The notes below the pieces were generated by a model. The model did not search any database. It was not told where the DNA came from and saw only the letters and a program-made list of their open reading frames with translations. 64,000 bases of DNA from Prasinococcaceae sp. CCMP 1430 (taxonomy: Eukaryota; Plantae; Prasinodermophyta). Below are positions 832-40,884 of this stretch, in pieces (positions within the stretch are counted from its first letter, which is position 1; each line of letters starts with the position of its first letter). Location: positions 1,638 through 65,637 of the forward strand of contig RQSC01000808.1 of assembly GCA_013416795.1 (NCBI GenBank), read 5' to 3'. The position numbers and the translations under genes are program-made.

Positions 832-1875
832 TCAGACGGCCCTGGTCCTTCCAGTGGCTGCCTCCCACGCCGTGAGTATGTGGCCAACGATGTCTGGCAC
901 GCCCTTGCCGTGTTTCACCTGCGTGGCCGTAGACCGCGCGTCAGCTCAGTGGACAGCGCATCCGTGCACGCACGAGCGGCCTGCGCAAGCGGATGCGCTT
1001 CGCGGCGGCGCGCATGGTCCTGAGTGCGGGCACGAGACGCGAGCGTGGCACCAGCGCACCTGACAGAACTCTGTGGCGCCGCCGCCGCGCGCCTTCGCGG
1101 CGTCGCGCGCCATGACGCCCAGGTCCGCGCCGATCGCTTCGGCGATGTCTGTTTTGTTTATCACCAGGAGGTCCGCCTGCGTGATGCCAGGGCCCCCCTT
1201 TCGCGGGATCTTATCGCCGCCGCTCACGTCGATGATGTACACGATGAAGTCCGCGAGCTCCCTGGAGTAGTTTGCCGCGAGGTTGTCCCCGCCGGACTCG
1301 ATGAGCAGCAGGTCGGCGTCGTGCGCCTTAGAGAGCTCCTCGAGCGCCTGTAGATTCATCGATATGTCCTCGCGGATGGCCGCGTGCGGGCAGCCGCCCG
1401 TTTCGATGGCGCGGATTCGGTCGCATGGCAGCGCCTCGTGGCGTTGCAGGAACTCGCCGTCCTCGCGCGTGAAGATGTCGTTCGTGACAGCGGCGAGCGA
1501 GTACTTGTCCCTGAGCGCGCGGCAGAGCGCGAGCATGAGCGCCGTCTTGCCCGTGCCGACGGGTCCGCCGATGCCCACGGTGAACGCGCGGCGCTCGTAC
1601 GTGCGCGCCAGCGGCCGCGCCCGCGCGTGGAAGTCGCCCGGCGAGGGGATGGGCTCGTGGTAGTGCGGCTTGAGACCGTCGTGCGAGTGCAGCACGCGGC
1701 CGTCGGGAGCGACGACGGTGGTAACCGCGTCACCCTTGCCGTGGCCGTGGCTGTGGTCGTGCGCGTGATCGCCCGCGTGGTCGTGGGCGTGGCCGTGCGC
1801 GTGGCCGCCCGCGCCGCCCTCCGCCTCCACGCGCTTCAGCAGGCCCGCCGCGAACGCGTCCGCCGCCCCCGCCAT
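832..1875 (-). CDS. ureG: Urease accessory GTPase UreG, plant/fungal type with His-rich N-terminus; exons 1875-1060 and 918-832
   Basis: [12 protein letters not shown]-loop, IETGGCPH Ni-binding motif, [33 protein letters not shown]-terminal [23 protein letters not shown]. Phase-0 intron 1059-919 (CAG|GTGCGC ... CAG|GTG) restores the C-terminus [18 protein letters not shown]. Confidence 0.95.
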
Positions 1876-2068
1876 CGCCGCGAGGACCGCCCCCCCCACC
1901 CACACCCCCGCCTCGCCTCGCCGACTCTCGCACACACGCGATGACCCGCGCCGCCCTCCCCTCCCCTCCCCTCCCCTCCTCGCGGGGGCGCTCTGCCGCG
2001 CGCACGACACCTGGCACCGCCCGTCGCAACCGCAACCGCGGCGCGTTCCTTTCGGTGTCGCGTGTTTA

Positions 2069-2348
2069 CATGTATTTTGATGGCAAATGTTTTCGAATGC
2101 CTTTTGATGGCAAGGTTTTTTTGCGTGCGCTTCGAAGGCCAACACGCTTAACGTTTTTTTTTTGTTTTCGCATGCATTTTGATGGCAATTTTTGTTTGCG
2201 TGCGCTTCGATGGCCAAACACGCCAAACGTTTTCGCATGCATTTTGATGGCAAGTTTGTTTGCATGCGCTTCGATGGCCAACGCGCCAAACGTGTTTTGT
2301 TTCGCATGCATTTTGATGGCAATTTTTGTTTGCATGCGCTTCGATGGC
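2069..2348. repeat. AT-rich degenerate minisatellite (about 4.5 units of 65-75 bp) in the ureG/urease divergent intergenic region
   Basis: TTTTGATGGCAA at 2075, 2102, 2177, 2242 and 2311, alternating with TTCGA(T/A)GGC at about 2131, 2206, 2270 and 2340. Intervening sequence is also conserved between units. Confidence 0.9.
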
Positions 2349-2507
2349 GAGCGTCGGTATGCTGCGCATTCGGGTTCATCCCGGCGCGCGCGCGCGGCGG
2401 TTACGAGGCAGGGGGGACGAGGGGGAGTGGGGGGAGTTGTGGGGGTGGGGAGGGGGTTGGGGTGGCGGTGCGGGCGGCCTCGGGCCACACTGCGCGCGCG
2501 CGTGGTG

Positions 2508-2611
2508 ATGCGCGGCGTGTTTGCGATCGGGCGGGCGACGGCGGCGGGGGCGGGCGGCGCGCTCGAGCTCGAGCTCAGCGCGCGCGAGTGGCGCGCGTCG
2601 CGCCTCGAGCG
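2508..2611 (+). CDS. Gap-truncated ORF (34 codons visible) resembling the N-terminal domain of urease Ni-chaperone UreE
   Basis: ATG 2508, MRGVFAIGRATAAGAGGALELELSAREWRASRLE, running into the N-gap at 2612. LxLSAxExxxSR resembles the UreE_N pattern LxLTAxERxxSR. Lies directly upstream of urease on the same strand. Confidence 0.3.
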
Positions 2612-2647
2612 NNNNNNNNNNNNNNNNNNNNNNNNNNNNNNNNNNNN
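2612..2647. other. Assembly gap (36 N)
   Basis: Run of N; true size unknown. Confidence 1.
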
Positions 2648-2820
2648 CAGCCGGCGCGGAGGCACGCGCGCTCCACGCGCGCTCGCCGCCGCCGCCGCGC
2701 AGCCAGCGTTGAGCGCACCCGCCAGGGCGGAGGAGAGAGTGAGCGAGGAGGCCCCGCGCGGGCGCCCCTCCGCCCTCGTTCGAGCCTTCGACGACCGCCG
2801 CGCCGCTCCCGCCCTTCGCG

Positions 2821-5352
2821 ATGCGGCTGTGTCCGCGCGAGGCCGACAAGCTCGCGCTCGCTTCGGCGGGCGCGCTGGCGCAGCGCCGCCTCGCGCGCGG
2901 CACGCGCCTGAACGCACCGGAGGCCATCGCGCTCGTCTCGGCGGTCTTGCTCGAGATGGTGCGCGACGGAGGCAAGTCCGTCGCAGAGCTCATGACGCTC
3001 GGCGCAACGCTGCTCGGCTCGCGCCAGGTGATGCCGGGCGTGGCGGACCTCGTACCGGAGGTGCAGGTCGAGGGCACCTTCAAGGACGGCACCAAGCTCG
3101 TGACCGTGCACCGCCCCATCTGTCGTGTGGACGGCGACCTCGCTCTCGCGCTCTATGGCTCGGGGCTTAGCCCGCCGGAGCTGTCTTCATTCGGGCCTGC
3201 GCCAGCTGAGGATGCGGCGCCCGGTGTCGTCACCCCGGGCGGCGATCAGCAGCGCGTTTCTCTCAATGCTGGTCGTGCGGCAGTGCGGCTGACGGTCGTC
3301 AATCGCGCCGACCGCCCGTGCCAGGTGGGCAGTCACTATCACTTCTTCGAAGCCAACAGCTGGCTCGAGTTCGACCGCGCGCAGGCGTATGGTCGCCGCC
3401 TGCACATCGCTGCGGGCACCGCCGTGCGCTTCGAGCCGGGCGAGGAGAAGACCGTGGTGCTCGTGGACGTCGGGGGCAACAGGGTGGGACGTGGCGGCAA
3501 CGGCCTGGCCGACGGCGCGCTGACGCCTGCCAACGCCGCAGCCGCTCTTGAGCGTGCGCTCGCGCGCGGTTTCCGCCACACGCCTGAGCCTAGCGCGCCT
3601 TGCGGTATCGCGGAGCCCGGCTCGGACTTTGACTTCAGCATGAGCCACGACGAGTATGCGGCGATGTACGGGCCGTCGGAGGGCGACCGCGTGCGGCTCG
3701 GCGACACCGCCCTCACGCTTCTGGTGGAGCGCGACCTGCGACGCACGTGCCCCGGCGACGAGTGCACCTTCGGCGGCGGCAAGACGCTGCGCGAGGGAAT
3801 GGGTATTGCCGTTGGGCGAACATCCGCGCAAACGCTGGACACTGTGATCACCAACGTGTTGGTGCTCGATTTCACTGGCGTATTCAAGACGGACGTGGGC
3901 ATAAAGGGTGGGCGCATCGTGGGACTGGGCAAGGCCGGCAACCCCGACGTGATGGACGGTGTGGACCCCGCGCTCGTGTGTGGCGTCAACACGGAGGCCA
4001 TAGCAGGCGAGGGAATGATCCTCACCGCCGGGGCGATGGACGCGCACGTGCACTTCATCTGTCCGCAGATCTGTGACGAGGCCATCGCCAGCGGCATTAC
4101 CAGTCTGCTCGGAGGCGGCACGGGACCCGCCAGCGGGACCTGCGCCACCACATGCACGCCCGGGCCTGAGCACATCCGCATGATGCTACAGGCGACGGAC
4201 GACCTGCCGCTCAACTTCGCCTTCACTGGCAAAGGCAACAGCTCCAAGCCCGAGGGTCTGCACGACATCATCGCTGCCGGTGCTGTGGGCCTCAAGCTGC
4301 ACGAAGACTGGGGCACGACGCCCGCGGCCATCGACTGCTGCCTCTCAGTCGCCGAGGAGCACGACGTGGCGGTGACGATCCACACCGACACGCTCAATGA
4401 GAGTAGCTGCGTGGAGCGCACCATCGAGACCTTCAAGGGGCGCGCCATTCACACGTATCACTCGGAGGGCGCAGGCGGTGGCCACGCGCCGGACATCATC
4501 AAGGTGTGCGGCGAGCCTAATGTGCTGCCGTCGAGCACCAACCCCACGCGGCCATTCACCGTCAACACAGTGGATGAGCACCTTGACATGCTTATGGTGT
4601 GCCACCACCTCTCCAAGCACATTCCGGAGGACGTGGCCTTTGCCGAGAGCCGCATTCGCGGCGAGACCATCGCCGCGGAGGACGTGTTGCACGACACTGG
4701 CGCGATCTCCATCATCGCGTCCGACTCGCAGGCCATGGGCCGCGTGGGCGAAGTGATCACACGGACTTGGCAGACCGCGCACAAGAACAAAGTGCAGCGC
4801 GGCGAACTGTCCGAAGACGCGGGGACAGGCGCAGACAACTTCCGCGCGCGGCGCTACGTGGCAAAGTACACAATCAACCCTTGCATCGCCCACGGCATGT
4901 CGCACGAGCTCGGCTCCGTCGAGGTGGGCAAGCTGGCAGACCTTGTGCTGTGGCGCCCCGCGTTCTTCGGCGCGAAGCCCGAACTGGTGCTCAAGGGCGG
5001 CGACATCGTGTGGGCTCAGATGGGTGACGCCAACGCGTCCATTCCGACGCCCGAGCCGGTACTCATGCGGCCGCAATATGGCGCGCGCGCCAAGGCGGTG
5101 GGCGCCAACTCCGTCGCCTTCGTCAGCAAGCGCGCCGTGAGCGAAAATGTCAAGGAGAAGTACGGCCTCGCCAAGCGCGTGATGGCCGTCGAGGCCTGCC
5201 GGGAGGTGGGCAAGGCTGACATGAAGCTCAACGATGCGCTGCCCAAGATCGAGGTGGACCCCGAGACGTACACCGTGACCGCTGATGGCGAGGTCGTGAC
5301 GTGTGAGCCGCTCGACGAGCTGCCACTCGCGCAAAAGTACTTCCTGTTTTAG
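2821..5352 (+). CDS. URE: Urease, single-chain (gamma-beta-alpha fused) plant-type, intronless, 843 aa
   Basis: Gamma domain ([18 protein letters not shown]), beta domain ([11 protein letters not shown]) and alpha domain with [36 protein letters not shown], flap MLMVCHHL and [11 protein letters not shown]. Confidence 0.99.
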
Positions 5353-5377
5353 ATCGAGCAGAATCGCACGATTCGAA

Positions 5378-6331
5378 ATGACTTTCAGTGCGGACATGGG
5401 ACGTGGAGGGAATGCTATGAAGGGCCGGAAAGAGACGGTACAGGGTGGCGGCGCTGGGGCGGTGTGCACTGGAGGGGCCGAAGAATCCTACGCAGGGACT
5501 GGAGCGACAGGCGGTGCCGCGCTCCCGCGATGGGCGCTGTGGCAAGTGCTCGATAGCGCCTTTCCTGCCGGCGGCTTCAACCACAGCTTGGGACTCGAGG
5601 CGGCGCTGCGCTCTGGCAGCGTGCCCACGCCTGCACACCTCGAGGGCGCCGTGCGCTCCGCTCTGGCGAACGTTGCGGCCTCACAGATGCCGCTCACGCT
5701 CGCAGCCTATGATGCCGCGGCACGTGCGGAAGCTGCCGCACGCGCGCGCATGGGGGCCGCCGCGCGCGGCGTCGCAGAGCTTTCTTCGATGTGGGAAGCT
5801 GCGGCTTGTGAGGCGATGCGTGCGTGCGGCGTTGCGGCCGCCCTGTGCGCGTGCAACAGCGTAGCGCTTGCGGCGGCAGCCGCTCAGGGGAACAGCCTGC
5901 TGCGCGCGGTGTGCGCAGCGTTCGCGGACAGCGGCGAGGGCAGTGCGCTCGGGTGCGCAGTGCGTGCGCTGCGCGTAGCATCAGAAGCGGACGGCGCGCC
6001 CGCGGCGCATCCGGCGGTGGTGATGGGCTTTGCTCTGGCCGCCGCTGGCGTCACTCGAGACGAGGCCGCACGCGCGCCACTCTTCGCAGCGCTCCGAGAC
6101 GTGCTGGCGGCTGCAACGCGCCTAAACGCGCTGGGCCCACTGGCTGCAGCTGCTGCGCATGCTCGTGCTGCGAGCTGCGCGGAGGCGCTCGCGCTCGAGT
6201 ACATCGAGGTCGACGCAAGGCGCAAAGCCGAAGGCCTGCCGCTCCACGAGCGCTGTGCGCTTGCAGCACCGCTTATGGACGTGCTGCAAGGGGGGCACGA
6301 CGAAATGTTCACAAAGCTTTTCTGCTCGTGA
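5378..6331 (+). CDS. ureF: Urease accessory protein UreF (start at ATG 5378, 5396 or 5417)
   Basis: WALWQVLDSAFPAGGFNHSLGLEAA, LRDVLAAATRLNALGP and the eukaryotic C-terminus PLMDVLQGGHDEMFTKLFCS. Confidence 0.92.
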   Translation: MTFSADMGRGGNAMKGRKETVQGGGAGAVCTGGAEESYAGTGATGGAALPRWALWQVLDSAFPAGGFNHSLGLEAALRSGSVPTPAHLEGAVRSALANVAASQMPLTLAAYDAAARAEAAARARMGAAARGVAELSSMWEAAACEAMRACGVAAALCACNSVALAAAAAQGNSLLRAVCAAFADSGEGSALGCAVRALRVASEADGAPAAHPAVVMGFALAAAGVTRDEAARAPLFAALRDVLAAATRLNALGPLAAAAAHARAASCAEALALEYIEVDARRKAEGLPLHERCALAAPLMDVLQGGHDEMFTKLFCS

Positions 6332-6457
6332 AGCGGGGGTTAGAGTATTTGAGGGACAGGAACGCAAGACGAGGTCAGTGAGACTGAATCTGCGTTGAGA
6401 GAGACAGCGCACGAACGCCGCGCACGCGAACACGGGCGTGCGATTGTGGAGGCGAGA

Positions 6458-7477
6458 ATGGCACCTCCACCGCCCGCATCGCTTGCGATGCCCCGCGGGG
6501 CTAAGGTTGGAAAGGGCGTCATCATCGTCGAGTCGCGTGGCGATGAAAAGCGGTGCGAGGTGGTGACGCAGTGCTCGAGCTATCCGTTGCGCCTCCTCGC
6601 ACCGCGCGCGCCCTCGGCGAGCTCGGCTTGGGTGTACGCCATCACGTTCGGGGGAGGCATACTCGCGGGTGACACCGTGAGCATGCGGCTGGAGGTGCGC
6701 GAGCGCGCGGCGCTCGTGCTGGCGACGCAGTCGAGCACCAAGGTCTTCAAGGCACCGCCTGGCGCACCTCCCGCGCGGCAGTCGATGGACGCATCCGTGG
6801 AGCGCGGTGGCTTGTTGGTGATCGCTCCCGATGCCGTCGCCGCGTTCGCGCACGCGCGCTACGAGCAACGCCAGAACTTCAATCTCAGCGCCGGTGGCAG
6901 CCTCGCCCTGGTAGACTGGGTGACGGCTGGCCGGCCTCACAACGGCGAGGCGTGGGCCTTCGACAGCTACGTTTCGCGCAACTCAGTCTTCGTCGAAGGC
7001 GAGCTGCGCGTCGCAGACAATGTGGAGCTATGCGCGGGCGGCCCGACGGGGGTGGCCGAGCGCATGGGCGCCTGCCGCGCGATGGCAAACGTGCTGCTGG
7101 TCGGGCCACGATGCGCGCGTGCCGCGCTCGAGGCGCTCAAGGCGACCAAGGGACTCACCCGCGCGCTGCTGGCGGCAGCGAAGCCGAGCAGCGTTCTCAG
7201 TGAGGCTCCTAGAGGGAGCGTGCCCGCAGCGTCGACAGGACACGCTGCGGACGGTGCACAAGATGAGGGGGGCGGGGCTGCGCGCAGTGCGGCTGTATCG
7301 GCGGCGCCGGCTCCGCCTTCCGTGCGCTTGTTCGCTTCGGCGTGCGAGGTCACTGGCTTCGATGGCGTGGCCGTGGCCGTGCGCGTGGCCGCCGAGCGCG
7401 CTGAGGATGTTCAGGGGTTCGTCAAGGCGCTGTTGGCGCCGCTGGAGGAGCAACTCGGCAGGGCGCCGTACACATGA
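6458..7477 (+). CDS. ureD: Urease accessory protein UreD
   Basis: SYPLRLLAP, WVYAITFGGGILAGD, LATQSSTKVFK, PDAVAAFAHARYEQRQ, LVDWVTAGR, WAFDSYVSRN. Confidence 0.92.
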   Translation: MAPPPPASLAMPRGAKVGKGVIIVESRGDEKRCEVVTQCSSYPLRLLAPRAPSASSAWVYAITFGGGILAGDTVSMRLEVRERAALVLATQSSTKVFKAPPGAPPARQSMDASVERGGLLVIAPDAVAAFAHARYEQRQNFNLSAGGSLALVDWVTAGRPHNGEAWAFDSYVSRNSVFVEGELRVADNVELCAGGPTGVAERMGACRAMANVLLVGPRCARAALEALKATKGLTRALLAAAKPSSVLSEAPRGSVPAASTGHAADGAQDEGGGAARSAAVSAAPAPPSVRLFASACEVTGFDGVAVAVRVAAERAEDVQGFVKALLAPLEEQLGRAPYT

Positions 7478-7703
7478 CTACCTTCGCGGCTGGGCATGTG
7501 CGTGGTTGGGATCGGGGGGCCGCATAGATTGGCACTTGCAAAACCCGTCCTTGCCGAAGGCGGGCTCTTTGAGCAGGACACTTGTCGACCTCCTCCCTCA
7601 CCCCCCACGCGCGCTTCTGCGTGCACCGTCGCCGGAAAAAGATAACCATACCTTTACATTGTGCAGCCTATTTTCTAAGTACCCGCACCAGCCCCGTGCG
7701 CCA

Positions 7704-9902
7704 CTACGCGCTCTTGTCCTCGGGCGTGATGACGAGGTAGCGGGGCCTGCGGACGACCAGGATGCAATACGCCAGCGCGTGGAAGCCGAAGAGCAGGCCG
7801 GCGAGCACGGCGGCGTTCTCGGCGATGGACACATCCTCAAAGGAGAGGAAGTCCAGCCAGTCGTTGCCTTGCATGCACCGCGCCATGCCCTCGCCGTCAT
7901 CCTCAACCGCCAGCCCTCCCATAGCTTCGCCGTCAGCAGGGACGTCGGCGGGAGTGTCGCACTCGAAGGACGCGTCGCGGAACTCGTTCACCGCCAGGGC
8001 GTGGAAGGTGTAGCGAATGAATGAGCCGTACTGCAGCCAAATCAGGTACACCGGAATGGAGTCCTCGTTGATGAGATACCCAGCGAACATCAAGAAGAGC
8101 ACAATGAAAGCGGGCGCGATCTGCGGCGCAAGCGCCACATCGGGGATACTAGCGCTGATGACCATCCCGAGGGCACAGCCGACCATGTAGTGCAGCATCT
8201 GCAAGCCAAGGTAGCTAATCATTTCCCGTCGGAGGCACGGCCAGTCATGTCAGCACAGCGCATGGATATTGATGCGCACGATAGGCGGAGGAACGCCAAG
8301 TCAGAGCACACGCGTGCAGAGGCGGCAGAAGCGAAACATTGAGCTGAGATAGGCGTGCTGCCAGCCGTCTATGACCGCTCATTTCACGTACATAGCGAAG
8401 TACCCCGCCCCTGGACGCAGACCAGCCATGAAGTACATGACAGAAGCACTGGCCAGGCCCGGGATGAGCTCCAGCGGCAGCGATGCGAAGAAGACGGCCA
8501 GATAGTAGGAGATGACACTGTACATGCCGCTCGCGCGCTCGCGCTGCACCACTTTCAGCTCCCTCGGGATGACCTGACTGACGCCGATCGGCGCACCGAA
8601 CGCTGCATTCATCGCTGAGAAGAAGAGCAGGCCAGTGCGGTCCTGAATGCTCTGCTGGGAGTTGGGCATCCGCAGGTAGACGAGCCCGAAGATGATCGAG
8701 AAGAATATGTTCATGCCGAGCTTGATGCCCAGCGCAAGCTTGTTGCGAGTCTGCTCGCGCCACGTGCGGCACAGCAGCAGCCAGAAGGACGTCCAGAAGG
8801 CGCCCTGCAGGACAGTTTGTTCGGGCGCCCGGTCGTCACCCTCGGCGGACACCGGGGCCTCCACTGCCTCCTTGCCCTCTGCGGCCAGGCCATCGAGCAC
8901 CTTGAAGATGCCTGCGAGCCGCGCCTCGGATTGAGCCTGCGCCCCGGGAGAGCGATAGTGCATCGAGATAGTGTCCAAGAAGAAGTCGGCGGGGTTGTAG
9001 TTCGGCGGGAGTGCGTGGCCCAAAACCCGTTCGAAGAAGTCCGCGGCATCGTTCGCCCCGCCCAAAAAGACCTGGCGGCCCTGCGAGAGCAGCAGCACCT
9101 TGTCAAGCGACGCGTAGATGCTGCTCCGTGGCTGGTGCACGCTGCAGACCACTGTGCGGTCGTGGCGGCTGAGCTCGATCAGTGTACCCATGACGTTGAG
9201 CGCCTGGAAGCTGTCGAGGCCGGACGTCGGTTCGTCGACGAAGATGAGGTTCGGTCGATGCAGCAGGTCGATGCCAATGTTGAGGCGCTTGCGCTCGCCG
9301 CCGGAGAGGCCGCGCTCGGCGCCCGGCACGTTGCCGCCCACAGGAGTGTGGCGAGCCTTGACCAGGCCCAATTCGTTGATGACCTCATCGACACGAGCGC
9401 GCAGCTCGGCCGTCGGCGTGCCCTGCGGCAGGCGCAGCGCCGCGGCGAAGAGCAGGGTCTCCTCGCAGGTAGACAGCGCGAAGAGCGCGTCTTCCTGCTC
9501 GACGTACGCGCTCACCTTGACAATGTCCTCCGCGTCGCAAGGCCTCCCACCGAGAGAGATTTCGCCCGTGAGCTCGCACTCGTACTCGTTGCTCGTGGGC
9601 ACGCGCCCGGCGAGCGCGTTCAAAAGGCTCGACTTGCCGGCGCCGCTCGGGCCAAGGATGGCCAGCAGCTCGCCGCGTTCCACCGACCCACTCAGGTTGT
9701 CTAGCAAGACACGCCGCTCGCCATCCTTCTTCTTGGAAGTCACCGCATAGGTCACGTTCCGCCAAGCGAGCCGACCGCCGCTGTCCGCGCCGTCCGCGCC
9801 ACCAACGGCCAGCACGACGTCGCCGCTCTTTGCTGCCGCGCTCGCAGCCGCCGTCGCGGCCATTTCACCGCGCCCGCGGGTACTGCCGCCGCCAGCGCCC
9901 AT
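7704..9902 (-). CDS. ABCG (White-family) half transporter; exons 9902(or 9863)-8392 and 8214-7704
   Basis: NBD-TMD order with GPSGAGKS, LSGGERKR, FVDEPTSGLDS and SVHQP. The phase-2 intron 8391-8215 (AT|GTACGT ... TAG|C) joins the TMD in frame (IPVYLIWLQYGSFIRYTFHALAVNEF). TGTAA on the minus strand at about 7654-7658. Confidence 0.95.
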
Positions 9903-10367
9903 GCCTGCCAACGCGCCACTCCGCACGTGAGCGAACGAGTGCCTCGCCTCCGCGCGCACCGCCGTGGCGCGCTGCTCTGGCGCCCATCGCCTGCCTTCAG
10001 AGACACGCACGCCCGCGCACACCAACACCTGTCCAGCCCTCTATCCACAAGAAGTGGCCGGGAGCGGCCCGCCGAGAGCGAGCCACACGCGCGCGGCGCA
10101 GTCGGGGAACCTTCCGCAATGTTTGCCGATGAAATACTGGCTCCGCCGTTTTCTGTAAGCAAAATCGTGTCACAAAAACGGACGAGATAGACATATTCTT
10201 GCCATCAAAATCAAGGGGCACGGTACGCCCCTCGGCGAGGCCGTCGTCGGCGGCGGCGGCGGCAGTTGCGGCGTCCCGCTGCGCTGGGAGGCTGGGAGGT
10301 GGCAGCGGCGCGGTCGCACCGGCTACGCAGTGCCACTCCGCCCCCCCGCGCGGCGCGCGGCGCGTCA

Positions 10368-12032
10368 ATGGCGCGCGCNNNNNNNNNNNNNNNNNNNNNN
10401 NNNNNNNNNNNNNNNNNNNNNNNNNNNNNNNNNNNNNNNNNNNNNNNNNNNNNNNNNNNNNNNNNNNNNNNNNNNNNNNNNNNNNNNNNNNNNNNNNNNN
10501 NNNNNNNNNNNNNNNNNNNNNNNNNNNNNNNNNNNNNNNNNNNNNNNNNNNNNNNNNNNNNNNNNNNNNNNNNNNNNNNNNNNNNNNNNNNNNNNNNNNN
10601 NNNNNNNNNNNNNNNNNNNNNNNNNNNNNNNNNNNNNNNNNNNNNNNNNNNNNNNNNNNNNNNNNNNNNNNNNNNNNNNNNNNNNNNNNNNNNNNNNNNN
10701 NNNNNNNNNNNNNNNNNNNNNNNNNNNNNNNNNNNNNNNNNNNNNNNNNNNNNNNNNNNNNNNNNNNNNNNNNNNNNNNNNNNNNNNNNNNNNNNNNNNN
10801 NNNNNNNNNNNNNNNNNNNNNNNNNNNNNNNNNNNNNNNNNNNNNNNNNNNNNNNNNNNNNNNNNNNNNNNNNNNNNNNNNNNNNNNNNNNNNNNNNNNN
10901 NNNNNNNNNNNNNNNNNNNNNNNNNNNNNNNNNNNNNNNNNNNNNNNNNNNNNNNNNNNNNNNNNNNNNNNNNNNNNNNNNNNNNNNNGCGCGGGCGCGC
11001 CCCGCGCTGCTGCCCTCGCTCCTGGCCTCGCTGCTGGCGCTCCTTTCCGCGGCCCGCCGAGCGCGCGCGCAGGGCTTCGCGCGCACCGACGACGCCGCCG
11101 GCGCGCCGCCCGCTCCGTTCGAGTACCAGCAGGACCCGTTCACGCGCTCGAGCGAGTACCCCTACAACGTGTGCAACCAGCTGCCGGGCAACATCGGCGA
11201 AGATGCGGCCTCGTACGCCGAGACGTACAAGCGCGCCAAGGTGCGCGCGCGCGTGCTTGACCCCCGTCCTCGGTGTCCCGCGCGACGCGGGGGAGGGGGA
11301 AGGGATCGGGGATGGGGGCGCCTTCGAAAGCGGAACGCAGAGAGAGAGAGAGAGGGAGAGAGCGCGCTCGACCCGCGCTCGCGGGGTGCTGACGCCAGCC
11401 GCCGCCGCGCGCTCTCGCCCGCAGTGCGTGCCCATAGAGGCGGGCGAGCTGGAGTTTTGCGACGCGGTCGCGTACGACTCGTGCGTGCGCATCCAGGAGT
11501 ACTGGCGCTTCGACAACCTGGTGGCAATGCAGTACGACGCCGTGCTGCAGGAGTGGAAGGACACGCTGACCGCCAACGACCAGGCGGCGCTCGTCGATCC
11601 GGGCTGCGACGCGGCCTTCAAGGCGTACTTCTGCTACGCGGCATTTCCCAAGTGCTGGGAGGTGCGCTCGCTCGCGCACGCGCCCGGCCTCGCGCGCGCG
11701 CGCGTGCTCGGCGCAGCCAGCGCTGACACGCCCGCCGCCGGCGCGAGCGGCCACAGGGTGATATCGAGGGCGAGTACTGGGAGGTAAGGGCGCCGACGCG
11801 CGCCGCGCGCACCCTCGCGAGCGCTGTGTTCGGCCGTGGCTGACTCCGGGATGCGCGCGCGGGCACGGCGCCGCCATCGCCGCGCGCTCGCCACCCGCGC
11901 AGCTCCCGCTGTGCTTCGACTACTGCGTCGCAGCCAACGCGGCGTGCATTGGCAACCCCGAGGCAGCCAAGCGCGTCTGCCGCTCGCAGGTAGGCACGGG
12001 CCGCGTGAGCCCCGAGGGGCGAACCGACATCA
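10368..12032 (+). CDS. Secreted cysteine-rich Frizzled-CRD-like protein, copy 1. Has the ATG but diverges from copy 2 after 12032. Exons: to 11240, 11425-11661, 11757-11783, from 11903
   Basis: ATG 10368 precedes the gap; signal peptide ARPALLPSLLASLLALLSAARRARA follows it. Three phase-0 GT-AG introns. Cys pattern CDAAFKAYFCYAAFPKC ... LPLCFDYCVAANAAC. Confidence 0.55.
10379..10988. other. Assembly gap (610 N) flanked by (GC)n on both sides
   Basis: Run of N inside a predicted signal-peptide coding region. Confidence 1.
10989..12032 (+). repeat. 1,044-bp direct repeat, copy 1 (partner 17029-18072, offset 6040)
   Basis: No difference found by eye, and the ORF translations match. Identity ends after GAACCGACATCA. 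Confidence 0.95.
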
Positions 12033-20857: not shown

Positions 20858-22882
20858 TTGCTGCCGCGGCGTGCGGCGCCAGGGCGGCGGCGGCGGCGAG
20901 AGAGAGAGTGCGCGGCGGCGGCGGTGGCGGTCGAGGTGGAGGTGGGGGGCGGCGAGGCGGTCGCGGCGCCGGTGGAGAGCGACCGCGAGTCGCTCGACGC
21001 GAATTCTGGCTTCTGCCGCGTCGCGGATCGCTATGACCCTGGCGCGGTTGCGGCCGCAGGTGCGAGCGCCCGCGCACGTGCTCGCTCGCCCGCTCCGCTC
21101 GCCGCCACGACGCCGCCCGCGGCACCGCGCGACGCTGACCCTCGGCGTCGTCCCACAGCGCGCGCCATGCCCCTCGCCGCCGCAAAGCGCGCGGCGGTGC
21201 TAGCATCCGCTGTCGCTCGCCTCGTTCGCCTCTTCAGTGCCTCCGCGGGTGGGCTCGGTGAGCTGCGCTCCGACGCTGTGCGCAGCAAGGCGATCGTCGT
21301 GCGCGAGACGCTCGCGGAGCTCGGCCCGACGGCGGTGAAGCTCGGTCAGAACCTCGGCAACCGACCCGACCTTGTGCGCGAGGACTACATGGAGGAGCTC
21401 AGCACACTGCAGGATCGCGTGCCGCCGTTTCCGAACGAGGAGGCCTTCGCTATCATGCGCTCCCAGCTGGGCATCGCCGACCTGGACGAGGTCTTCTCCG
21501 AGCTGAGCCCGGAGCCGGTCGCGGCCGCCTCCATCGGGCAGGTGTACCGCGGCAGGCTGCGCTCCAACGGCGCAGAGGTAGCCATCAAAGTGCAGCGGCC
21601 AGGCGTCGACCAGGTGTGCACGCTCGACCTGTACTGGCTGAGGGTGCTCGCCGAGAGGGGCCTAAATGCGCTCGCGAAGGAGCGCCTGGGCGTCGAGGCA
21701 ACGCTGCTCGTGGACGAGTTCGCCGAGAAGCTGCTAGAAGAGCTGGACTTCGAGCAGGAGGCGCGCAACCTGGTCGAGTTCCGTGCGAACTTTGCCGCAG
21801 ACGAGCGCGTGACGGTGCCCGAGCCATACATGCCGCTCTGCCGCAAGCGCGTGCTGGTCATGGAGTGGGTCGACGGCCAGCGCTGCACGGCGCCAGGCGC
21901 GCTCGCTGGCAGGGAGGCCACGCGCAAATTCATCAATCTGGGCGTCGAGAGCGGCCTCAAGCAGCTGCTGGAGTTCGGGCTCTTCCACGGCGACCCTCAC
22001 GCAGGGAACGTGCTGGCATCCACCGACGGCGACCTCGCGTACGTCGACCTCGGCAACGTGGCGCAAATCTCGCGCGCCAACCAGGAGAGCCTCATCGATG
22101 CTACCGTGCACGCCATGAACGGCGACTACGAGGGACTCGCGGCGGACCTGGTGGCGCTGGGCTTCGTCGCGCCCGACGTTGACATTGCGCCGATCGCCGA
22201 GTCGCTCGAGAAGGTGTGGGGGGACTCGCTCAGCAAGGCGGGGCTCGCGGACTTCTCCTTTCGCCGCCTCACGTACGCCTTCAACGCGCTGCTCCTCATG
22301 CATCCCATCCGCGTGCCTGAGCGATTTTCGCTGGTCATCCGTGCGCTGCTCACGCAGGAGGGCATCTGCATGCAGCTGGACAGCTCCTTTCGGTTCCTGG
22401 AGGTGGCCTTTCCCTACGTTGCACGTCGACTGCTCACGGACCCCGACCCCGCGCTGCGTCTGCGCATGCTGCAGGTCGTGATTGTCGAGGGCGAGTTCAG
22501 GTGGGACAGGCTGCGCACGCTGCTGTCCATGGCGACCATGAACAACCCGGACGCCATGAGCGGCGGCAAGGGCGGGCTGCTCGCCAGCCTGAACCTGCGC
22601 ATGCTCGCGTGGGAGTCCGCGCGTATGCTCTCGCGGGACGCGGAGCTGCGTACCGCGCTGCTGAGCGGCTTCGAGAAGCGCTCGACGCTTTCGCACGCGC
22701 GTGAGTTCCTAGGAATCGTCGCGCTCGTTCTCGGCGCGCTCGGCGGCGCGTGGGCTGAAAGGGCGGTGCTCACGGCGAGGCGGGGGTGGCGTGCGCTCGC
22801 GTTCACACGCTGGTGGCGGCTGCGGCGACGGCGGCGCGACTCCAAGGACGGCACGCCCCCACCCCAGGTGGCGCTCGTCTGA
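20858..22882 (+). CDS. ABC1K1: Plastoglobule atypical kinase ABC1K1 (PGR6)-like; start unresolved; probable intron 21060-21158
   Basis: LGPTAVKLGQNLGNRPDLVREDYMEEL, AAASIGQVY, VAIKVQRP, LVDEFAEKLLEELD, QLLEFGLFHGDPHAGN, PIRVPERFSLVIRALLTQEGIC, AFPYVARRLLTDPDPALR. No in-frame ATG upstream of 21167; the ORF track starts at a TTG. Confidence 0.88.
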   Translation: MLPRRAAPGRRRRRERECAAAAVAVEVEVGGGEAVAAPVESDRESLDANSGFCRVADRYDPGAVAAAGASARARARSPAPLAATTPPAAPRDADPRRRPTARAMPLAAAKRAAVLASAVARLVRLFSASAGGLGELRSDAVRSKAIVVRETLAELGPTAVKLGQNLGNRPDLVREDYMEELSTLQDRVPPFPNEEAFAIMRSQLGIADLDEVFSELSPEPVAAASIGQVYRGRLRSNGAEVAIKVQRPGVDQVCTLDLYWLRVLAERGLNALAKERLGVEATLLVDEFAEKLLEELDFEQEARNLVEFRANFAADERVTVPEPYMPLCRKRVLVMEWVDGQRCTAPGALAGREATRKFINLGVESGLKQLLEFGLFHGDPHAGNVLASTDGDLAYVDLGNVAQISRANQESLIDATVHAMNGDYEGLAADLVALGFVAPDVDIAPIAESLEKVWGDSLSKAGLADFSFRRLTYAFNALLLMHPIRVPERFSLVIRALLTQEGICMQLDSSFRFLEVAFPYVARRLLTDPDPALRLRMLQVVIVEGEFRWDRLRTLLSMATMNNPDAMSGGKGGLLASLNLRMLAWESARMLSRDAELRTALLSGFEKRSTLSHAREFLGIVALVLGALGGAWAERAVLTARRGWRALAFTRWWRLRRRRRDSKDGTPPPQVALV

Positions 22883-22962
22883 CGGCGATGTGCGGGAATC
22901 GCACCTTTTTTGTCACACTATTAAACATTAACTACATGTACCACGAGCTCGTGGCTGCGCGT

Positions 22963-24210
22963 TCACTCCACGCCACGGCGAGACGCCGTGGGCATGAGCG
23001 TCCTGTCCTTGGCGGCCACCTTCCTGCGGCGCTTGGCCATGAACTTTTCGAGCTGGCCCGACTTCTTGAGAGACTCGTACTTGTCGACGAGCTCCCTCTT
23101 CTTGCGGTCCGATTTCTTCTCGAAGTACGGCCCTCTGCCCCCCCGCGCGCGCTCACGCTGGCGCCGCCGGCTCTCGTCCTCGAGAGCGGCATCGCGCCTG
23201 CGCTTCTGGTGGTCGGCGACCTTGGCCTCTAGCGACGCCACCAGCCGCTTGAGCTGCTCCTTGCGCGCCGCACCGTGGGTGCGCTTCACCTGCTGCTTGA
23301 GCGCGTCGCGCTCCTCGGCCATCTTCTCGTCGAAGACGAAACCGTATTGCTTGCGGAAGACGCGGTCGTTGAAGGCGCCCATGGACGCGTCGAAGCGGGG
23401 GTCCTTGGACTTTGGCTTCGCCGGCGCGAGGCCCTCGATCTCGCGCAGCATGGGCACGCGCGCCTTGGACGACACCTCCTGCGGCCGGTTCTTGTTGGCA
23501 CGCGCGCCGATTTTTTCACGCGCCTCGCGCTCCCTCTTGGCCGCCAGCCACGCAGGCACCTTGCGCGCACTCGTGCGGCCGTCTCGTTTCGACGCAAGCC
23601 GCTCGCCGAGCGGCACGTCCGCCTCGGCAGCCGCGTGCGCGCCCGTCCCCTCGCCGTCTGAGTCAGACTCATCGTAGTCCTCTTCGTCTTCGGAGCCACT
23701 CTCGGATGCGTCGTCGTGGCCGCGCAGGCGCGCGCCCGCGCGCGTCCCATCGCCTTCTTCGTCCTCGTAGTCACCCTCCTCCTCCTCCTCCTCGCCGTCG
23801 CTGTCGTCGTAGTCGTCCTCGTCGCTCTCGTCATCCTCCTCGGCGGCGGCCATCGCGGCCTCCATGCGCCGCGCCATGCGTGCGACGTCGTCGCCCGCGG
23901 CTCCACGCGCCCGTCCCTCGCGGTATTCCTCGTCCTCGTCGTCGTCGTCCTCCTCCTCCTCCTCCTCGCTCTCGCCACTGTCCTCCGCGGCCGCCATCGC
24001 CGCCTCCATGCGCCGCGCCATGCGCGCCACGTCACCACCCGCCTGCACCTCCTCCCCTTGATCCCTTCCGTCGGGCGTCCTTGGCCGAGCACGTGCTGAC
24101 CTCGCCTGCGGGCGCCGTGAGCGAGCTGCAACATTTAGGCGCCGCGCCCGCCACTGGCCGCGGATCCGCGCTCGCGGCGCGCCGCAGCAGCCGCTCGCGC
24201 ACCAAATCAT
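22963..24210 (-). CDS. RRP36: rRNA biogenesis protein RRP36 with acidic N-terminus (start uncertain: ATG 24210 or 24021)
   Basis: RANKNRPQEVSSKARVP, KSKDPRFD, FRKQYGFVF, PYFEKKSDRKK, KYESLKKSGQLEKFMAKRRRKVAAKDR. Confidence 0.9.
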   Translation of the reverse strand: MIWCASGCCGAPRARIRGQWRARRLNVAARSRRPQARSARARPRTPDGRDQGEEVQAGGDVARMARRMEAAMAAAEDSGESEEEEEEDDDDEDEEYREGRARGAAGDDVARMARRMEAAMAAAEEDDESDEDDYDDSDGEEEEEEGDYEDEEGDGTRAGARLRGHDDASESGSEDEEDYDESDSDGEGTGAHAAAEADVPLGERLASKRDGRTSARKVPAWLAAKREREAREKIGARANKNRPQEVSSKARVPMLREIEGLAPAKPKSKDPRFDASMGAFNDRVFRKQYGFVFDEKMAEERDALKQQVKRTHGAARKEQLKRLVASLEAKVADHQKRRRDAALEDESRRRQRERARGGRGPYFEKKSDRKKRELVDKYESLKKSGQLEKFMAKRRRKVAAKDRTLMPTASRRGVE

Positions 24211-24410
24211 CAAAAGCAATCTGCGGTTCTGGGAGTTTTGCGCCCATCGTAACGCGAAATGGAAGGTGCATTTGGATACTTCAAAACGCGCTTTTGGAGG
24301 CGATTTTATTTTGATTTTGTTTGCGCGCGCATAAGGCGTCGCCGGCGGGCGCGTCGTAGCGGGCGCTACTGCGCGCGCGCGGGGCGTGCGCCGCCCCCCC
24401 CCCCCTCTGC

Positions 24411-26418
24411 ATGGAGGGGGGCGCCGCTGGGATGCAGGCGGCGCAGGCGCAGCAGGCGGGAGGCTCGCACATGATGGGCTACCGACGGGGCGGGGGAGGA
24501 GGCGGCGGAGGCGGAGGCGGAGGCGGAGGCGGCGGAGGCGCTCGCGGCGACAACGTACGTGCGCGCGCAAGAGCATGCCGCCGCGTGAGTGAGGCAGGAG
24601 TGGGGGGAGACGGGGGTGGGGTTCGGCTCCGCTCGCCTGCCTCCCCAGCTCCTAGGCACGCGCTTGGGCGCGTTGCGGGGCCGATCGCGTCGTGCGGCGA
24701 CGAGTGCATGCACACACCGCCCGCGCCTCGGCGGAGCCCGCGCGCGCACCAGCGCGATGAGCGGGCGGGGGACGGTTTGGGGAGCGCTAGGTGGCAAAAA
24801 AAAAAAAAAGAAGCGGGAGTGTGCGCCGCCGCGCCATGAGGCGGGGAGAGAGGGGTGGCAGGAAGGGGGGGGCGAGCGGGGAGGGTGGAATGAGTGAGGA
24901 TGGCCCGCGCTTGTTGCCGCGCTCGGCACCGATGATGTGCCTCCCTCCCCCTCCCCCCCCCCAGGCGCACCTCCTCCCATCGCCTGCGCTCCCCGGGCGC
25001 GGCGCTTGGCGGGATACCCTTGCGCAGACCCGCGCGCGAAACGCAGCCGAAGTGATGTGCGCTGGAGAGGAAACCCTAGCTCTGCTCGCAACGGGAGACC
25101 CGCGCCACGCGCCTTCCGGCTTGCGCGCCGCGTGGCGTGGCGCGTCACTATCAGGGGCGCCGGCCCTCCCCGCTCCCCCTCCGCCGCCTGCTCCTCCTGC
25201 GATCCGCCGCGCGCTTGCTCCATCGCCGGCGGCGTGGTCGATCGCCCCAAAGCGTCGCCATCTAACCCCCCCCCCTCACCCCCTCGCCGCCTGACACCGC
25301 CGTTCCCCTCACCAACCCACACACGCGCGCGCGCGCACCCTTCGTCCCCCCACACACCCTCCACCCGAAAGAAGCCGACCAAAAAGGCGCCACCCCAATC
25401 GGATCAGCCCAGCTTCGTGTGCATGATGGGCGACATGACGCAGACGTACGGCGCGACGTCGCACTGCGAGGTGACCACGTGCGCCGCGGCCAGGCGCGAG
25501 CAGCGCTTCCGCCCGATGCGCCAGGCCCGCGAGCTCGACGCCTTCCGCTCGTGCTGCATCAAGTCGGTGAACCTCGACGACCACGGCTCGGGCGTGGCGT
25601 ACGAGTCCGGCGTCCCGACCATCCCGCAGCCGGGCACGATCGCGGAGGACAAGCTCCGGGCCATCCGCAAGGCGCTCGCCACGTTCGAGCCGCCCGAGGT
25701 GGGGTGCTCGTTCGCGCGCGGCGGCAACGTGTCGGTCGTGTGCTGCTCGAAGATCGACACCGACCGCAACGCGCCGTGGGAGGGGCTCCACCCCACGCAG
25801 GCGCCCTTCCTCAAGCCCAAGACCATGGAGGACAAGGGCGGCCGCCGCAAGTCCACGTCGGACGACGGCGGCAACCTGAACAGCGACGCGCGCCTCGTGC
25901 TCAACTTCTACGTGCGCGCCCGCGCGCTCGCGCGCTGGGCGAGCGCGCGGCGAAAGCTCCGCGCGTGGCGCGCGCTGATGGGCGGCTTCGGCGGGCTCGG
26001 CAGCGGCAGCAGCGGCGGCGGCAGGCCCTCGGCGCGGGCGCCGCGCACCGCGCCGCGCGTGTCGTCCACGGCGATCGCGGAGTCGGCCAGGAGCAACGCC
26101 GAGGCGGGCGCGGTGCTCGCGTGGCCGCCGCACAAGTTCATCGAGAAGGAGATCGTCAAGTTCTTCAAGAAGCTCACGGGCGTGTACGGCATCGTCCTCG
26201 TGGACGTCGAGCGGCGGCACATGTTCGCCGCGCGCGACCCCGAGGGCACCGTGCCGCTCCACATGGCGCTCACGGCCGACAACTGCGTGCTGGTCGCCAC
26301 GGAGGAGGGCCTGCTGCCCGCGAAGGCCACGAAGACGCGCGCCATCGCCGCGGGCAAGTACGTGTACGGCCCGGGCGAGTACATCATGGAGGAGGCCCAC
26401 GAGCTCGACCTCGAGTAG
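24411..26418 (+). CDS. DUF3700/Wali7/TSJT1-like Ntn-amidotransferase-fold protein; main exon 25408(ATG 25423)-26418, possible Gly-rich first exon 24411-24554
   Basis: KLTGVYGIVLVDVERRHMFAARDPEGTVPLHMALTADNCVLVA resembles the asparagine-synthetase-like L.G.F.FVL.D...F.A.D..G..PL motif. A phase-0 donor at 24555 (AAC|GTACGT) and acceptor at 25407 are frame-compatible. Confidence 0.6.
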
Positions 26419-40702: not shown

Positions 40703-40884
40703 GCACGGACGAAGCGACGCGCGTCCTCCTCTGCCGGCGCATCGCCGCCAGACCGTACAATTCAGACTGCGTGGAGAAGCGGCGTTGCGCGACGCAAATC
40801 TCTCTTGCGTAATACTGTCATGCACTTCAATGTGTACGCGCTCCTGCGAAGGCGAAGACATGCGCGCACGCGGAAACTAACAGG

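Follow-up and report, generated by a model that had tools for sequence, protein, structure and literature searches.

Results

The urease locus

The window analysed, a 64 kb stretch of DNA from the high-GC marine green alga Prasinococcaceae sp. CCMP 1430, carries urease, ureF and ureD head to tail on the plus strand, with ureG divergent and upstream of urease. All coordinates given for the three array genes in an earlier sequence-only reading were reproduced. The features of the locus are as follows.

832–1875, minus strand: ureG (urease GTPase), divergent from urease, Pfam cobW/UreG 1.6e-35, intron near the 3′ end.
2068–2348, unstranded: array of nine copies of a ~17–30-nt motif (GCATGC-N-YTTYGATGGC), repeat families D1 and D2.
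2612–2647, unstranded: gap of 36 N in the assembly, before urease; in its place a DNA contig from run X8 carries 396 letters (between 2611 and 2648).
2821–5352, plus strand: urease, single-chain gamma-beta-alpha, eukaryotic type, 843 residues, intronless (Pfam, GC3 0.84, RNA contigs along its length).
5353–5416, plus strand: urease-ureF spacer, 25 nt to ATG 5378, 43 to ATG 5396 and 64 to ATG 5417, 52% GC.
5378–6331, plus strand: ureF, 317 residues from ATG 5378 or 304 from ATG 5417, Pfam UreF 4e-10.
6332–6457, plus strand: ureF-ureD spacer, 126 nt, 60% GC.
6458–7477, plus strand: ureD, 339 residues, intronless here, Pfam UreD 4e-50, first ATG of the frame at 6458.
7478–7664, plus strand: RNA-covered region downstream of ureD (X2 contig 7412–7630; JGI contig L003 ends at 7664).

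The 843-residue urease unites the Pfam domains Urease_gamma, Urease_beta, Urease_alpha and Amidohydro_1 in one protein, and its gene ends in TAG (5350–5352). The ureF frame, +1 relative to urease, is open from 5303 and closes with TGA at 6329–6331, and its product is 57–61% identical to that of a relative (P0002). Its only in-frame ATGs before the conserved WALWQVLDSAFPAGGFNHS block are 5378, 5396 and 5417, and as 5396 reads ACG in five of six environmental contigs of the same species, the predicted start is 5378 or 5417. The ureD ATG lies in a strong context (A at -3, G at +4), and its product is 59–61% identical to that of a relative's two-exon ureD. Translation of ureG probably begins at position 1875, with an ATG whose product opens MAGAAD... 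and continues into a His-rich stretch, as a relative's UreG, 73–82% identical, aligns from the first residue of this start; the part of the listed 477-residue ORF upstream of 1875 was rejected as spurious, and a UreG-like C-terminal peptide is encoded beyond the ORF stop. The true DNA length at the assembly gap is 396 nt. A single-chain urease beside genes of the UreF, UreD and UreG families, the ureG intron and a GC3 like that of the neighbouring genes together identify a nuclear eukaryotic cluster.

Spacers and flanking signals

Recomputed from the ORF coordinates, the two spacers measure 25–64 nt and 126 nt, as had been read before, and sequence checks agree that TGTAA is absent from both. 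They are the shortest tandem spacers in the window, where the others measure 182 and 473 nt, and such an arrangement of three functionally linked genes, adjacent and on one strand, is clearly not due to chance. A 25–64-nt spacer is too short to hold a 3′ UTR with its poly(A) site, a promoter and a 5′ UTR, and therefore the transcripts must at least overlap. Folding gave nothing notable in either spacer (z -0.36 for urease-ureF, -1.0 for ureF-ureD), Rfam returned no match at E<=0.1 and no IRES-like structure was found. The lowest 60-nt GC of the second spacer, 0.48, equals that of another tandem spacer (40703–40884). Among six strains the urease-ureF spacer has one polymorphic site and no indel; over both spacers 3 of 190 sites vary, compared with 2.1–2.6% of third codon positions and 10 of 226 sites in the spacer between ureD and the neighbouring ABC-transporter gene, too few sites for inference.

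The sequence-only reading had also argued for a polycistron from what the spacers lack, namely TGTAA and an AT-rich promoter patch. Neither argument proved informative. TGTAA occurs within 200 nt after the stop in only 4 of the 18 confident genes of the window and is missing after ureG and also, in agreement with that reading's own caveat, after ureD, so we dropped it as a diagnostic poly(A) signal. The AT-rich patch was dropped as a promoter mark because GC stands at about 80–81% in the 173 nt before the urease ATG and at 65–83% upstream of a relative's ureF; AT-richness is not required of a promoter here.

The nine-copy motif array sits in the low-GC intergenic region between the divergent ureG and urease. 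A pattern search of the 64 kb gave 10 matches, against 0.28 expected, nine of them at 2068–2348 and none in or near the internal spacers, making this region a candidate shared control region of ureG and urease. Composition and codon usage show no disturbance where the urease and ureF coding sequences end; GC3 holds at 0.84–0.90 up to the end of urease, with nothing to suggest that a control region is embedded in it.

RNA across the array

Contigs from two libraries, X1 and X2, bridge the spacers colinearly and unspliced. An X1 contig (5188–5604) crosses the urease-ureF spacer, and the ureF-ureD spacer is crossed by contigs from both libraries (X1 6270–6532, X2 6142–6549), all with 0 mismatches and no joints. 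Both spacers are crossed by a single 2,599-nt contig, L003 (JGI 3300016765), which corresponds to window positions 5066–7664 and so runs from the 3′ part of urease through ureF and ureD to a point 187 nt past the end of ureD. It has one mismatch over this length, compared with differences of 0.4–1% in the Tara contigs, and so derives from the same strain as the genome. The JGI sample is probably a transcriptome, and runs X1 and X2, labelled 'RNA?', are probably RNA too. The junction-spanning RNA that had been proposed as a check of the polycistron is thus present, in the form of assembled contigs, which cannot separate one tricistronic molecule from overlapping mRNAs.

Contig depth is flat over urease, ureF and ureD (7.6–13.9 in X1, 4.3–6.3 in X2), a crude measure from one condition per library. 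In X1 depth falls to 0 in the flanks at 2400–2596 and 7916–8300, which argues that the coverage is not DNA carry-over. In X2, at a depth of about 5, a contig begins at 5355 and 4961–5354 has no coverage, a boundary that would fit a ureF-specific start. The ureD 3′ UTR extends for at least 153–187 nt and converges on the ABC-transporter gene (stop at 7704, minus-strand TGTAA at 7658). No A-tails in the spacers were seen among the loose ends listed, in contigs that drop tails, and the listed joints and loose ends of X1 and X2 include none near 5353–5417 or 6332–6457 that would signal a spliced leader. A fusion by splicing or editing was ruled out, as the RNA contigs are colinear, without joints or altered letters in the spacers, and so was one by readthrough or frameshifting, as urease and ureF are read in different frames and, past the ureF stop, a TAG in the ureF frame (6341–6343) blocks readthrough. 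For another tandem pair of the window (39125–40699 and 40885–42531), taken up as a control for joining in the same RNA assembly, two look-ups gave no recorded protein.

Gene order in other eukaryotes

The order urease-ureF-ureD on one strand recurs in two distant eukaryotes. One (L015-L017) has spacers of 313 and 248 nt; in the other (L014) the ureD ATG follows the ureF stop by 5 nt, and ureD has a GT-AG intron. The layout of the window itself is present on six independent Tara and Logan contigs, where it continues into eukaryotic neighbours. The order is not universal, as the genes are dispersed elsewhere (L001, L009, L018). A closer relative (L001) has ureF divergent from ureG, behind its own promoter and outside any urease array, and in a close relative, which may be the same one, ureD stands by itself after Sec15 (L009-L012), from which it follows that ureF and ureD can use promoters of their own. 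The gene to the left of ureG shows no synteny with L001, and JGI metagenome contigs, scanned twice for relatives of ureF, yielded none.

The most conserved part of the array is the ureF-ureD linkage, with 5 nt between the genes in L014, 126 nt here and 248 nt in L015. Natural UreD-UreF fusion proteins also exist (P0066, P0101, P0144), and UreF and UreD (UreH) form a complex (PMC3792862), so coupled production of the two would be favoured. The recurrent order, the 5-nt junction and the fusions suggest selection for coupled UreF-UreD production.

Translation of the downstream ORFs

Known green-algal polycistrons have a short ORF1 (medians 291–600 nt) and few upstream ATGs (PMC7896298, PMC11291117), and leaky scanning is their supported mechanism, with reinitiation and IRESs disfavoured (PMC11291117). 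Leaky scanning does not fit urease-ureF-ureD. Its features (a short ORF1, a weak ORF1 start context and few ATGs before ORF2) are not found here: urease as ORF1 is 2,532 nt long and ATGs are not depleted, 33 preceding ureF against 24 expected from composition, so that leaky scanning cannot feed ORF2 or ORF3. The ATGs before ureD number 48, the further 15 comparing with 10 expected.

Discussion

The urease-ureF-ureD array is real and operon-like, and its genes are transcribed together or as overlapping messages. We give an even chance to a single operon-like transcription block that yields multi-ORF RNAs with urease, ureF and ureD. Such a block would take its transcription from the control region between the divergent ureG and urease, where alone in the window the motif array occurs; Pol II would run through both small spacers to give polycistronic-type RNAs, and enzyme and UreF-UreD maturation pair would stay co-expressed. 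Short inter-ORF distance and equal abundance are among the published criteria for algal polycistrons (PMC7896298); here the spacers, at 25–64 and 126 nt, fall below the 182 and 473 nt that separate the remaining tandem pairs of the window, and depth is about equal on the three ORFs in both libraries. We infer single molecules with at least two complete ORFs, starting upstream of urease. To make UreF and UreD, the cell would then have to rely on termination-reinitiation, on internal entry or on extra shorter transcripts. Of the tricistronic mRNA proposed from sequence, what stands is unspliced RNA over both spacers at equal depth; the contigs are not single molecules and the locus lacks the translational hallmarks of known green-algal polycistrons. 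We rate as rather unlikely the fuller version, a tricistronic nuclear mRNA of an early-branching green alga from which the enzyme and two maturases are translated on one molecule by a route other than leaky scanning, for example termination-reinitiation, with the ureF-ureD stop-start coupling an old, conserved eukaryotic 'mini-operon' that L014, another alga with introns, would share through its 5-nt junction.

A substantial possibility, to which we give about a third of our belief, is that three separate monocistronic mRNAs overlap, those of ureF and ureD starting within or just after the upstream coding sequence and those of urease and ureF being polyadenylated inside the next gene, so that the contigs would be assemblies of overlapping ends, as in the compacted genomes of microsporidia and nucleomorphs. 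This would be the default under cap-dependent scanning, given 33 and 48 upstream ATGs, and the strong context of the ureD ATG, the X2 contig start at 5355 and the independent transcription of ureF and ureD in relatives all accord with it. Overlapping transcript ends are evidently tolerated in the window, where convergent genes lie 80 nt apart (22882/22963), and a promoter that need not be AT-rich could lie concealed within a gene's coding part. Composition and codon usage, however, run undisturbed to the ends of urease and ureF, the upstream motif array has no copy near the spacers, and a separate promoter is hard to fit into the 5-nt junction of L014; coincidence would have to explain why urease, ureF and ureD are covered equally deeply in both libraries. 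An intermediate arrangement would pair a monocistronic urease mRNA that ends in the 5′ part of ureF with a bicistronic ureF-ureD mRNA whose start lies close to the stop codon of urease; UreD would come from reinitiation or from a shorter RNA of low abundance. This reading draws on the same X2 start, on the X1, X2 and L003 contigs that all cross the ureF-ureD spacer, and on the conservation of the ureF-ureD linkage and the UreD-UreF fusions. We think it improbable, as X1 5188–5604 and L003 cross the urease-ureF junction too, at equal depth, and ureF as ORF1 would still hold 15 ATGs against 10 expected.

The 'RNA?' labels of X1 and X2 leave room for the coverage to be genomic DNA carry-over, and the cluster might also be a bacterial contaminant or operon; we consider either very improbable. 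X1 covers the three genes but has zero depth on the flanks, the urease domains are fused in a single chain, an intron interrupts the adjacent ureG, GC3 is like that of the neighbours, and the layout is repeated on six Tara/Logan contigs with eukaryotic neighbours. Features of a bacterial urease operon, that is separate ureA, ureB and ureC genes, sigma-70-like promoters and intrinsic terminators, were not found at the locus.

Should single molecules carry all three ORFs, the operon-like block would be a functional operon that joins an enzyme to its maturases in a green-lineage nuclear genome, and with an ORF1 outside the rules of algal polycistrons it would be a naturally occurring locus at which to test reinitiation or internal initiation downstream of a long ORF. 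If the mRNAs are separate and overlapping, the locus still illustrates clearly how promoters and poly(A) sites can lie within the coding sequence of adjacent genes, and calls for caution when genomes of this kind are annotated.

Comparison with known systems

The array resembles bacterial urease operons (ureABC with ureEFGD, or ureDABC...; the bacterial-type locus L013, ureD-ureAB-ureC, serves for comparison) in its adjacent, co-oriented structural and accessory genes and in the logic of coupling the enzyme to Ni insertion. It differs in the fused urease, in the order urease-F-D with divergent G, which is not the usual bacterial one, in having no Shine-Dalgarno or sigma-70 features, and in the introns of neighbouring and orthologous genes.

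Other parallels lie among the algae. In the green-algal polycistronic loci (Gallaher et al. 2021, PMC7896298; PMC11291117), as here, colinear ORFs on one strand lie in different frames with intervening stops and apparently equal RNA abundance; the present distances fall within the published inter-ORF range (medians 40–260 nt), and an enzyme with its assembly factors resembles published assembly-factor pairs. Unlike those loci, the array has a long ORF1 (2,532 nt against medians of 291–600 nt) with undepleted ATGs. The word 'Urease' is absent from the main text of PMC7896298. A cluster of algal urease-assembly genes has been reported before, as cited in PMC7826186 after Qiu et al. 2013. The present locus likewise groups urease with ureD, ureF and ureG in a eukaryotic nuclear genome, and differs in its compressed spacers of 25–64 and 126 nt and their continuous RNA cover. 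The closer relatives differ again, with ureF beside ureG only (L001) and ureD alone (L009).

In the compacted genomes of microsporidia and nucleomorphs (PMC2803860, PMC2387174) spacers are likewise too short for termination and initiation signals, and RNAs enter neighbouring genes. This genome, however, is not globally so compact, its other spacers measuring 180–600 nt, and the functional linkage and conserved gene order of urease, ureF and ureD point to selection rather than mere compaction.

Gene array and spacers

The urease, ureF and ureD genes form a real, operon-like array, lying head-to-tail in a window of ~68% GC in which ORFs are long and intron-poor and several N gaps occur. The array is flanked by a divergent and a convergent gene:

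Genes of the urease locus (window coordinates)
start probably ATG 1875, - strand: ureG, divergent from urease, intron near the 3' end
2821-5352, + strand: urease, 843 aa; Urease_gamma, Urease_beta, Urease_alpha and Amidohydro_1 in a single chain (Pfam)
frame open from 5303, stop at 6331, + strand: ureF (Pfam UreF, 4e-10), in the +1 frame relative to urease
first ATG 6458, stop 7477, + strand: ureD (Pfam UreD, 4e-50)
stop 7704, - strand: ABC transporter, downstream and converging on ureD

The predicted 843-aa urease is of the eukaryotic fused type. The ureG start is placed at 1875 because, counted from that ATG, similarity to a relative's UreG sets in at residue 1; the first 168 codons of the 477-aa 'ureG' ORF (946-2379, minus strand) are spurious and translate a repeat array, a His-rich stretch comes after the probable start, and the C-terminus resumes past an intron beyond the ORF stop. 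The ABC-G-type transporter is split, probably by an intron, into two minus-strand ORFs (7704-8222 and 8379-10028) separated by ~156 nt.

Only three in-frame ATGs (5378, 5396 and 5417) lie ahead of the conserved N-terminal block of UreF, leaving a urease-ureF spacer of 25, 43 or 64 nt, and the ureF-ureD spacer is 126 nt. The sequence-only reading, which had proposed a polycistronic urease-ureF-ureD mRNA, gave these ATGs and lengths exactly, as it did the ureD ATG, the context of which is strong (A at -3, G at +4). In five of six environmental contigs of the same species T is replaced by C at 5397, converting the middle ATG to ACG, so the ureF start is 5378 or 5417. The main argument is one of size, as 25-64 nt cannot house a 3' UTR, a processing signal, a promoter and a 5' UTR.

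Composition and signal motifs say little, despite the weight previously given to them. TGTAA is indeed absent from both spacers, but it lies within 200 nt of the stop in only 4 of 18 confident window genes, and ureG and ureD also lack it. Nor is a missing AT-rich patch informative, since the 173 nt preceding the urease ATG are 81% GC (the Tara contig L004 is of like composition farther upstream) and the region upstream of a relative's ureF is 65-83% GC throughout. The spacers themselves are 52% (urease-ureF) and 60% GC (ureF-ureD), and a comparison tandem spacer at 40703-40884 is also 60% and, like the ureF-ureD spacer, falls to a minimum of 0.48 GC over 60 nt. Elsewhere in the window, a minus-strand TGTAA lies 46 nt past the transporter stop, and the convergent genes 21167-22882 (+) and 22963-24576 (-) have stops only 80 nt apart (gap 22883-22962), so the 3' ends of both must overlap.

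RNA across the spacers

Contigs from two same-organism libraries labelled 'RNA?' (X1, 2015; X2, 2017), one of several DNA runs (X8) and a metatranscriptome (X3) were placed on window positions 2400-8300, the whole of which is spanned by one 8.5-kb DNA contig of X8. In X1, contig 5188-5604 spans the urease stop and every candidate ureF start, contig 6270-6532 spans the entire ureF-ureD spacer, and a further contig covers 6523-7314. The X2 contigs are 5355-5506, 6142-6549, which again spans the ureF-ureD spacer, and 7412-7630. All these X1 and X2 contigs have no mismatches and no joints, indicating that both spacers are present in RNA, unspliced and unedited. A JGI contig (L003, 3300016765) found by exact-protein look-up matches window 5066-7664 over its 2,599 nt with one mismatch, linking the urease 3' end, ureF, ureD and 187 nt downstream; as Tara and Logan environmental contigs diverge by 0.4-1%, L003 must derive from the strain whose genome this is. 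Ga0186 records such as this are probably MMETSP culture transcriptomes loaded into IMG. The lack of junction-spanning RNA that the sequence-only reading had named as grounds for rejecting a polycistron was therefore not observed, both spacers being bridged in X1 and L003 and the ureF-ureD spacer in X2 as well. That the signal is an artefact is very improbable: X1 depth is zero at 2400-2596 and 7916-8300, which argues against DNA carry-over, the 'RNA?' labels of both libraries notwithstanding.

We put at about even the chance that multi-ORF transcripts are a major product. Contig depth is flat over the three genes (7.6-13.9 in X1, 4.3-6.3 in X2), but assembled contigs cannot distinguish one long molecule from overlapping shorter RNAs, and a less probable though substantial alternative is a set of separate mRNAs that overlap, their starts and ends lying within adjacent coding sequence. 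Coverage in X2 is absent from 4961 to 5354 and a contig begins at 5355, which hints weakly that ureF has a start of its own; the depth there is only ~5. The same contig start would also fit a monocistronic urease mRNA accompanied by a bicistronic ureF-ureD mRNA, a combination we regard as decidedly improbable, the X1 contig and L003 both crossing the urease-ureF junction.

A candidate ureG/urease control region

The low-GC part of the divergent ureG/urease intergenic region (2068-2348) carries nine tandemly spaced copies of GCATGC-N-YTTYGATGGC, a pattern that is matched 10 times in 64 kb where 0.28 matches would be expected. Our search of the 64 kb found no copy close to either internal spacer or within the 3' portion of urease or ureF, and urease GC3 stays at 0.84-0.90 up to the gene end. 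This circumstantial evidence is consistent with a single control region shared by ureG and, on its opposite side, urease-ureF-ureD. The nine-copy array is a candidate for a control element that responds to nitrogen or urea. The motif core resembles the RY/CATGCA element. Upstream of urease, the X8 DNA contig has 396 nt in place of the 36-N gap at 2612-2647; the last 139 nt of this stretch, covered by L004, are GC-rich and without an obvious ORF, and no UreE-like sequence was seen in the ORFs around the gap.

Comparison with relatives

Within the species, six contigs from Tara and Logan share an identical layout, and their spacers are free of indels. In a closer relative (L001; UreF 57%, UreG 73-82% identical) ureG and ureF are divergent with no urease gene in between, and ureF is followed by a 444-nt spacer of low GC. 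In Tara scaffolds L009-L012, from a close relative possibly the same as that of L001 (UreD ~60% identical), ureD occurs by itself, following a Sec15 gene. Each accessory gene can therefore run on its own promoter. The L009 ureD has exons at 9541-9717 and 9992-10705 around an intron of ~275 nt, and gene callers placed a spurious antisense ORF over the first exon; the window ureD has no intron.

Distant UreF relatives (35-41% identity) were obtained by exhaustive search. Contigs L015-L017 (SRR8128903/6/7) encode a fused 838-aa urease followed, after 313 nt, by ureF and, after a further 248 nt, by ureD, the spacers being T-rich and of low GC. In L014 (SRR9302961) an intron-bearing urease is followed after ~155-165 nt by ureF, and the ureD ATG lies 5 nt past the ureF stop (2024-2034), with a GT-AG intron in ureD (2258-2327), making this ureF-ureD pair a candidate second, tighter bicistron. 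The large-genome eukaryote of L018 has ureF alone, and L013 is a bacterial-type locus, ureD-ureAB-ureC. A 50%-identity representative library contains natural single-chain fusions (P0066, P0101, P0144) with UreD N-terminal and UreF C-terminal, and a UreF-UreD(H) complex is known (PMC3792862). Together, the layouts, fusions and complex indicate that coupled production has repeatedly been selected for, most strongly in the case of ureF and ureD. Algal clustering of urease-assembly genes has been reported (PMC7826186); we found no report in the literature of polycistronic expression from such a cluster.

Translation of the downstream ORFs

We consider it unlikely that a tricistronic mRNA is in fact translated into UreF and UreD. 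Neither spacer has an unusual RNA structure (fold z -0.36 and -1.0) or matches an Rfam family. A perfect 7-bp hairpin (GTGGAGG ... CCTCCAC, 6445-6469) holds the ureD ATG in its loop, in an overall fold no better than shuffles (z -1.0). Were the tricistronic RNA the template for both proteins, the mechanism would be new for the lineage; otherwise shorter RNAs would serve. Published green-algal polycistrons have a short ORF1 (median length 600, 444 and 291 nt in the three species) with a weak start context, ORF2 is preceded by few alternative ATGs, and experiments on them favour leaky scanning and speak against reinitiation or an IRES (PMC7896298, PMC11291117). The urease locus differs from these in its long ORF1 of 2,532 nt and in upstream ATGs above the expectation from base composition, with 33 against 24 from the urease start to 5377 and a further 15 against 10 up to the ureD start.
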